Of a DNA stretch of 40,502 bases, positions 12,522 through 13,159 are shown piece after piece. The position numbers and the translations under genes are program-made. The DNA lies in assembly GCA_048772705.1 (NCBI GenBank), contig JBLWGC010000066.1, forward strand, positions 1 through 40,502, given 5' to 3'. Position 1 is the stretch's first letter. Every line of letters begins with the position of its first letter. Below the pieces are notes generated by a model. The model saw only the letters and a list, made by a program, of their open reading frames with translations. It ran no database searches and was not told the DNA's origin. The DNA comes from Leidyana gryllorum EB-2025a. Lineage: Eukaryota > Protista > Apicomplexa.

Positions 12522-13159
12522 TGTTGTGGTGTACCAGTTAGTGCAATGGGAAGTGTCTTGTGCTCGCAACCTGGAGGTCGCAGGATCGAATCCACGGCCC
12601 TGCACTTCGCCCTTGGCTAGCCACCTCGACCGGCACATGGCTGCCCTTAGTATTGTGATCCAGTAGTGCAGTGGTAACTACTCGGACTTGGGACCCGCAG
12701 GTCGGCGGATCGAATCCCACCTCGGACAACTGTGCGAAGACCCCCAGGTGACGGGTGAGGGCAAGTCGAGGATGGAGGACGGGTGGGGGAGCCCCCAGGA
12801 GGCCCCACAGCGTCGTACACGCACGTCTAAGCTGCACACTGGTCTGCAGTGCCACGACATGTTCGGCGACTGCGCCAATAGCACAATGGTAATGACTACG
12901 GACTTATGTTCTGAAGGTCGGTGGTTCGAGTCTCCCCGCGGACAAGCCTGACTCCACGGCATTGTCAACGGGACTGGCTGCTTAAGGTAAGTCTTGTCCA
13001 TACGTGTGCAGGTGAAGGCTGTACACGCGCGCGCCAAGACATTTGAGGCAAGACCTTAGCCGTAGCACATAGGTAGCGTTAGGTCCAACTTAGATGCTTT
13101 TTAGAAAAGGAAAAAGGGGGAACGAACTCGACAGTCGGCACTCACCCTGGAGCACAACA
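12522..13159. mobile_element. Solo-LTR-like element with three tRNA-derived A/B-box cassettes (copy 1)
   Basis: Ends TGTTGTG...CACAACA; 5-bp TSD ACAGT (12517-12521, 13160-13164); splits a minus-strand tRNA-Tyr pseudogene at the anticodon. Confidence 0.85.

Follow-up and report, generated by a model that had tools for sequence, protein, structure and literature searches.

Candidate RNA polymerase III promoter boxes in three tRNA-like units of a chromovirus long terminal repeat from the tRNA arrays of a gregarine

The 40,502-bp contig JBLWGC010000066.1 of Leidyana gryllorum EB-2025a, which was analyzed over its whole length and is referred to here as the window, is a dense tRNA array, with 120 tRNA genes called by ARAGORN in 40.5 kb and 166 model hits. 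Within this array recurs a unit of 638–640 bp that carries, in its first 430 bp, three co-oriented tRNA-like units with A and B boxes of the kind found in RNA polymerase III (Pol III) promoters. The locus raises the question of what element this is and why such boxes would have been kept in it. Judged from sequence, the account that is moderately favored is that of a chromovirus long terminal repeat (LTR) whose boxes are kept through selection for TFIIIC binding, with or without Pol III initiation.

An initial annotation of the window had given the unit's coordinates, its TGTTGTG...CACAACA ends, its 5-bp flanking repeats, and the positions of six boxes, all of which proved right when the sequence was re-inspected. 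The copies and their target-site duplications (TSDs) are as follows.

12522..13159, + strand: solo LTR copy 1, 638 bp, with TGTTGTG...CACAACA termini and empty-site paralogs on contigs 61, 4, 215, and 38
24190..24828, + strand: solo LTR copy 2, the copy 1 insertion carried along by a 6.6-kb block duplication, with flanks and ACAGT identical to those of copy 1
31999..32637, + strand: solo LTR copy 3, an independent insertion, its locus duplicated on contig 98 and with an empty-site paralog on contig 153
12517..12521 (left) and 13160-13164 (right), and in the second block 24185-24189 and 24829-24833, no strand: TSD ACAGT, a single ACAGT in the empty paralogs
31994..31998 (left) and 32638-32642 (right), no strand: TSD GCCCA, flanking copy 3

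The three window copies are 99.4–100% identical. Copies 1 and 2 lie inside a duplicated 6.6-kb block (8917-15493 and 20650-27163; 97.8% identical), and the window therefore holds two independent insertions rather than three: the occurrences listed in the initial annotation are all present, but two of them represent one event. In the assembly (15.5 Mb, 237 contigs), 14 full-length LTR copies were found at 97–100% identity, along with an old copy at 75–82% and another that has an internal deletion. Fixed ends and TSDs had been anticipated at other copies as well; the TGTTGTG...CACAACA termini are present in 14 of the 14 full-length copies, and all eight independent solo LTRs, counted after merging loci duplicated on two contigs, are flanked by a perfect 5-bp TSD (ACAGT, GCCCA, CAGAG, GAATC, ACTCT, GTTTG, AAGGT, and TCAGT). 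For four of the eight, element-free paralogous array segments match the predicted empty site, with the 5-mer present once. When pre-insertion sites were rebuilt by deleting the LTR plus one TSD copy, the empty site matched the prediction at 192–193 of 195 positions for copy 1, at 194 of 195 for a solo LTR on contig 71, and at 85 of 85 for one on contig 68; for copy 3, the paralog runs unbroken across the junction. The window copies are solo LTRs that arose by LTR–LTR recombination, and the TSDs of the solo LTRs were made by integrase and are 5 bp long.

The parent element was recovered on contig 43, where two LTR copies 5.6 kb apart enclose a complete element of 6240 bp with an interior of 4961 bp. 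Its primer-binding site (PBS), TGGTGGACGACCTGGG, lies 2 nt past the 5' LTR and is complementary over 16 nt to the 3' end of the genome's tRNA-Ala(AGC) plus CCA. The gag frame (332 aa) contains a CCHC zinc knuckle, CHQCGKANHFARVC, and pol (1180 aa) has the order protease (PR), reverse transcriptase (RT), RNase H, integrase (IN), and chromodomain, with Pfam matches to Asp protease, RVT_1, RT_RNaseH, Integrase_H2C2, rve, and, at the IN C-terminus, Chromo. The chromodomain keeps three of three aromatic-cage residues, and a purine tract, AGGGGGAG, is positioned 3 nt ahead of the 3' LTR. The unit is almost certainly the LTR of a chromovirus, and its parent is a recently active, autonomous 6.2-kb Ty3/gypsy chromovirus of a eugregarine apicomplexan.

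Paired copies enclosing a PBS, gag-pol, and a polypurine tract (PPT), which had been proposed as something to look for, are thus all represented in the contig 43 element. The initial annotation had left the choice between an LTR and an integrase-mobilized miniature element; the former is correct, whereas the latter is not supported, the only paired copy being the autonomous chromovirus. This copy, coding and 6240 bp long, departs from the architecture of a terminal-repeat retrotransposon in miniature (TRIM), namely two LTRs, PBS, PPT, and no open reading frames (ORFs) within at most ~1.3 kb, and neither a second internal region nor a TRIM-sized LTR pair was found among the LTR copies in the 15.5 Mb. 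The two LTRs of the contig 43 element are 97.0% identical and its outer flanks (GTTCC versus GCTGT) form no TSD; the copy is therefore probably recombinant, the missing TSD probably being due to inter-element recombination.

The HSP90 of the assembly is closest to those of eugregarines (Protomagalhaensia, 79%; Gregarina niphandrodes, 74%), and gypsy-like LTR elements in gregarines have so far been the subject of survey-level reports only (PMC9141347). The nearest relatives of the pol protein are unnamed metagenome proteins at no more than 61% identity, and an exact 31-nt LTR pattern scanned against metagenome contigs gave no match. A long inverted repeat is contained in the element's 3' untranslated block (interior 4571-4959; contig 43:178894-179286), which recurs at 78–98% identity, with no LTR adjoining, on contigs 26, 6, and 148. 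The block was set aside as a shared repeat that is unrelated, and it may represent a mobile or recombined module in its own right.

The features inside the LTR are given for copy 1, with scores from two models that were built from 76 type-I tRNAs of the window, one including the cloverleaf and the other using sequence only.

12536..12606, + strand: unit 1, A box TAGTGCAATGG at 12539-12549 and B box GGATCGAATCC at 12583-12593; cloverleaf 22.2 bits, sequence-only 26.2 bits; 12/12 invariants, 10/21 pairs
12657..12728, + strand: unit 2, A box TAGTGCAGTGG at 12664-12674 and B box GGATCGAATCC at 12707-12717; cloverleaf 26.0 bits, sequence-only 20.1 bits; 12/12 invariants, 11/21 pairs
12868..12944, + strand: unit 3, A box TAGCACAATGG at 12879-12889 and B box GGTTCGAGTCT at 12923-12933; cloverleaf 22.4 bits, sequence-only 20.8 bits; 12/12 invariants, 10/21 pairs
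13098..13122, + strand: T5 run (13098-13102) and purine tract AGAAAAGGAAAAAGGGGGAA, a candidate Pol III terminator or R/U5 polyadenylation region

With either model the units score 20–26 bits (E values of 1e-7 to 4e-9 in a 1.1-kb search), all on one strand, while real tRNAs reach 50–83 bits with the cloverleaf model and 29–55 bits with the sequence-only model. The contribution of structure is thus ~25 bits in real tRNAs and ~0 in the units. Only 10–11 of 21 stem pairs are kept per unit, where random sequence would give ~8. No tRNA, 5S, or other credible Rfam family was matched at E≤10 across 12300-13400, and ARAGORN made zero tRNA calls inside the LTR, in agreement with the initial description of stems that barely pair. 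The nucleotides that define the boxes have fared differently. Twelve positions at least 88% invariant in real tRNAs were scored (T8, G10, A14, G18, G19, A21, T33, G53, T55, C56, A58, and C61; in standard numbering, which is model numbering +1 from the D loop onward), and the three units together keep 36 of 36, comprising D-loop and T-loop nucleotides and the A- and B-box cores. Full-length pseudo-tRNAs of the array with similar stem decay keep 7–11 of the 12. The earlier claim that boxes were kept while structure was lost is thus upheld for each unit separately.

The spacing of the A and B boxes, 43–44 nt, is tRNA-like, and the B boxes score at the 33rd to 37th percentile of real tRNAs. From unit to unit, the boxes plus variable loop are 79–97% identical, compared with 29–62% elsewhere. 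Units 2 and 3, which are 62% identical outside the boxes, are probably paralogs; unit 2 is present, genome-wide, in LTR copies only. The tRNA nearest to unit 1 is a Met gene with a CAT anticodon at 16513-16584, read as initiator-type, to which it is 70% identical over 70 nt. A derivation of the units from tRNAs is very probable. That they are functional tRNA genes is ruled out by the 10–11 of 21 pairs and the ~0 bits gained from the cloverleaf model, and a tRNA-derived short interspersed nuclear element (SINE) is ruled out by the fixed TG...CA ends, the 5-bp TSDs, and the confinement of the units to LTR copies. At contig 43:119-123 kb, a 3.5-kb block that is duplicated in tandem contains rearranged unit 1 fragments beside genuine tRNA genes, at locus positions 2396-2464 and 2562-2599 and again at 5888-5956; one strand carries the 3' half together with the spacer, and the 5' half lies ~100 bp away in inverted orientation. 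These fragments were considered as a separate SINE source and rejected, being rearranged pieces of unit 1.

Variation among the LTR copies tends to spare the units. Of 42 substitution or indel events, 6 fall within the units (240 nt) versus 15.8 expected (P=8e-4), 1 falls inside the boxes versus 4.7 expected, and 5 fall in the first 214 nt of the LTR versus 14.1 expected. In a diverged LTR on contig 194, unit 3 is the best-kept unit. Together, the sequence comparisons support the view that it is the promoter boxes, and not tRNA structure, that are being kept, and they hint at selection; that the boxes are under selection appears probable. Binding of TFIIIC or Pol III to the boxes may be the most likely reason for their retention, a step that is advanced with less assurance than selection itself.

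Several observations weigh against this account. The A boxes of the units score low, at the 3rd to 9th percentile of real tRNAs. The low variability of the LTR's 5' third rests on 42 events, with P=0.04 once the most diverged LTR is omitted. The diverged LTR on contig 194 carries two changes in the B box of unit 1 and two in that of unit 2, while its spacer between units 2 and 3 is conserved as well as the units. Related metagenome chromoviruses (55–58% amino acid identity) have LTRs of 250–300 bp in which a tRNA-like unit is absent, so the modules are a recent, lineage-specific gain. In the window, a T4 run within 15 nt downstream is absent from 112 of 118 testable array tRNA genes and present in 6, and 77 have none within 200 nt; the Pol III rules or the activity of the array genes are therefore uncertain, with either an unusual mode of Pol III termination in this organism or array genes that for the most part do not act as ordinary transcription units. 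The preference for the anticodon loop described below is based on three events.

According to the favored model, selection on the element would keep the boxes because TFIIIC binds them, with or without Pol III initiation. TFIIIC on the boxes would give each LTR a chromatin state resembling that of a tRNA gene (tDNA), open and insulated, amid heterochromatic arrays and nests of transposable elements (TEs), toward which the canonical chromodomain is predicted to steer integration. The full-length genomic RNA would most likely come from Pol II: the sense strand of the element contains seven runs of four or more T, the T5 of each LTR included, and a Pol III origin of this RNA is therefore unlikely.

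The alternative that survives best, although it is judged unlikely, is a neutral relic, in which pieces of tRNA, pseudo-tRNA, or tRNA-derived SINE entered U3 by template switching or recombination and have no function, the intact boxes reflecting luck or recent capture. Capture is plausible in that the element packages tRNAs and resides in tRNA arrays, which abound in capturable tRNA fragments; the units are absent from related elements, "not a few" Repbase LTRs contain partial tRNA-like sequence (PMC10886601), and the contig 194 copy shows that box decay is possible. This explanation has to contend with the retention of all 36 invariants despite near-random stems, where control pseudo-tRNAs at similar decay lose 1–5 of 12, with the avoidance of the units by inter-copy substitutions, and with the arrangement of three units in one orientation whose boxes are far more alike than their sequence elsewhere.

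A second alternative draws on where the element has inserted. Two of the target genes in the window are split as follows.

13160..13193 (5' part, positions 1-35) and 12472-12521 (3' part with intron), - strand: split tRNA-Tyr(GTA) paralog, in which the TSD, as ACTGT, corresponds to positions 31-35
32638..32715 (body) and 31990-31998 (first bases), + strand: split tRNA-Lys-like degenerate pseudogene, cut by copy 3 at approximately positions 4-8

The rebuilt copy 1 site is a tRNA-Tyr(GTA) paralog that is ~80% identical over 75 nt, intron included, to the intact gene at 11718-11797. The contig 71 site is a tRNA-Pro(TGG), which, as rebuilt, has C at position 33 instead of the near-universal T, and the contig 68 site is a tRNA-Gln(CTG). 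In these three genes, and thus in three of the five array insertions, the TSD corresponds to tRNA positions 31–35, from the last anticodon-stem base to the second anticodon base and between the A and B boxes. Two of the three insertions are antisense to the tRNA gene and one is sense, and the targets have no sequence in common. The chance of three of five array insertions sharing one offset is ~5e-5 after correction for 72 offsets, at an assumed array density of roughly one tRNA-like sequence every 245 bp. The fifth array insertion lies 19–24 bp upstream of a tRNA-Ser-like gene.

The remaining four of the nine insertions, namely three solo LTRs and the full-length copy, are located in other gypsy elements, within RT, RNase H, PR, or IN sequence. 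No tRNA-like sequence was found within 1.5 kb of these four, and none of the copies has landed in the units of the LTR itself. Insertion is confined to repetitive DNA, namely gypsy elements and tRNA genes of giant arrays. Residence in the arrays is not in itself evidence of preference. A rough first-pass count gave 16,812 tRNA-like candidates in the 15.5 Mb, on the order of 10^4 and spread over most small contigs; with ~16,800 candidates the arrays may account for one-third of the assembly, and five of eight solo LTRs in arrays is not above expectation given that share, so array enrichment was dropped as an argument. The initial suggestion that the element persists in tRNA clusters holds insofar as five of nine insertions are in arrays, but it does not account for the four in other gypsy elements, and enrichment is lacking. 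The restriction to repeats fits chromodomain-guided heterochromatin integration combined with a local bias toward the middle of tRNA genes.

Published elements provide partial parallels for this pattern. Copies of Ty3, Tj1, and the Dictyostelium elements DGLT-A, Skipper-2, and TRE5/TRE3, all of the Ty3/gypsy or non-LTR type, are concentrated around tRNA genes in compact genomes (PMC5006619, PMC4600332, PMC6101501), and the element described here likewise has copies at tRNA genes. However, tRNA-directed elements insert ~1–50 bp upstream or ~8–150 bp downstream of the gene and not inside it (PMC5006619). The present element has split the gene at positions 31–35 in three insertions and at 4–8 in one, and tRNA genes are not its exclusive target; base-precise hits in the anticodon loop are a new observation relative to published tRNA-directed elements. 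Skipper-2 is also a chromovirus, but its aromatic cage is degenerate, in contrast to the three of three cage residues found here. As far as the heterochromatin-targeting chromoviruses of Gao et al. 2008 are described in PMC5006619, the element resembles them in its PR-RT-RNaseH-IN-chromodomain order, its canonical cage, and its nesting in TEs and repeats, and differs in its three tRNA-derived LTR modules and its base-precise anticodon-loop hits. Dada elements (PMC8869645) likewise find a safe haven inside tRNA or snRNA genes that are present in many copies; they differ in being DNA transposons that recognize specific target sequences, whereas the present element is an LTR retrotransposon with three target sites that lack a common sequence.

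It is conceivable, although rather improbable, that these insertions reflect tDNA mimicry and repair coupled to targeting. A TFIIIC-bound gene body would guide the integrase, which would cut between the boxes, and the LTR would supply replacement A and B boxes, so that the split tRNA gene stays a TFIIIC site, a target, and a safe haven. This reading overlaps the selection-for-binding model rather than competing with it. It is consistent with three TSDs at 31–35 in three tRNA species, in both orientations and without a common target sequence, with the positions of the remaining two array insertions relative to tRNA-like genes (+4 to +8 and −19 to −24), and with the start of unit 1 only 9 nt into the LTR. 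Against it stand the small number of array events (five), the four of nine insertions in gypsy elements far from any tRNA-like sequence, and the absence of insertions into the LTR's own units; moreover, the anticodon stem is an inverted repeat, and a local DNA-shape preference alone is possible. The fullest version of the idea, which is somewhat less probable again, would have the integrase of an autonomous chromovirus directed to positions 31–35 by the TFIIIC-bound gene body, and the LTR providing three replacement box modules, each insertion rebuilding TFIIIC/Pol III sites and extending a tDNA-like domain. If true, the element would be a self-perpetuating tDNA mimic that may have helped to scramble and enlarge the giant tRNA arrays of the gregarine.

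The remaining alternative follows from the closest published precedent. Cassandra, cited in the initial annotation, is apt as an LTR with a small-RNA-gene promoter, but Helenus (Kojima 2024, PMC10886601) is closer, its LTRs containing tRNA-derived sequence that has kept the A and B boxes but does not encode a functional tRNA. Helenus, Cassandra, and Ajax are grouped as TRIMp3; Helenus families are non-autonomous TRIMs of 311–1263 bp with one tRNA-like unit per LTR, found in fungi, animals, and one plant, and it has been argued that autonomous partners should not share such LTRs (PMC10886601). The present element resembles Helenus in its box-conserving, non-functional tRNA-derived LTR sequence and in the commonness of solo LTRs, and resembles the fungal and plant families in its TG...CA ends and 5-bp TSDs. 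Unlike Helenus, the LTR here belongs to an autonomous 6.2-kb chromovirus of an apicomplexan, carries three units, and has no TRIM form among the copies found. With Cassandra, as far as it is described in PMC10886601, it shares a small-RNA-gene promoter embedded in both LTRs of an integrase-mobilized element; Cassandra is 5S-derived, plant, and non-autonomous in that description, whereas the sequence here is tRNA-derived and an Rfam 5S match was not found.

By analogy with these families, the boxes could be working Pol III promoters that produce ~570-nt LTR transcripts, from unit 1 to the T5 run, as non-coding RNA or as the genome of a yet unseen non-autonomous TRIM partner, a use proposed for Helenus and shown for Cassandra, the only TRIMp3 member in which transcription from the Pol III promoter has been demonstrated (PMC10886601). 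The tRNA-like box spacing, the normal range of the B-box scores, and the published precedent (PMC10886601) agree with such a use, as does the single T5 near the LTR 3' end, which is the sole run of four or more T on the + strand of the LTR (LTR position 577) and which the initial annotation had placed, nearly exactly, at ~13097. This is nonetheless the least probable of the alternatives, with no TRIM-sized LTR pair among the copies in the 15.5 Mb, a sole internal region that is 5 kb long and coding, a transcript that would lack the primer-binding site if it stopped at the T5 of the 5' LTR, and T-run termination that is atypical even of the array tRNAs in this genome.

The arrays themselves have further features. 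Blocks of tRNA array recur on many contigs at 97–100% identity. Many array tRNA fragments start or stop near model positions 25–35, in the anticodon arm and hence in the same region as the chromovirus insertions (14482-14510, 26152-26181, 29992-30034, 11811-11848, 11491-11535, and 3999-4026); these ends may reflect past insertions and deletions, or recombination there. LTR copy 1 is flanked by two degenerate pseudogenes, one tRNA-Pro-like (13251-13321, + strand; 23 bits with the cloverleaf model) and one tRNA-His-like (12299-12370, - strand; 15–20 bits). An ORF-less 3.05-kb insertion at 17717-20771, which includes an 11-bp satellite (~18.7–19.9 kb), separates positions 14 and 15 of a tRNA-Met; it was considered as a relative of the LTR and rejected, as it has no similarity to the LTR and no TSD.

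Pol III-type LTR promoters have previously been seen as a speciality of tiny non-autonomous TRIMs (Cassandra, Helenus, and Ajax), with published work maintaining that their autonomous partners have to use ordinary Pol II LTRs. The element is among the few well-resolved, recently active retrotransposons in Apicomplexa, and its host genome carries tRNA arrays with thousands of gene copies. Base-precise insertion in the anticodon loop would represent a new target geometry and would offer direct access to the question of how TFIIIC-bound genes are read by an intasome. More generally, a full coding chromovirus with three box modules that are apparently constrained breaks the TRIM-only assumption and suggests a use of TFIIIC/Pol III sites that differs from production of the retrotransposed RNA and might lie in insulation, chromatin state, or targeting.

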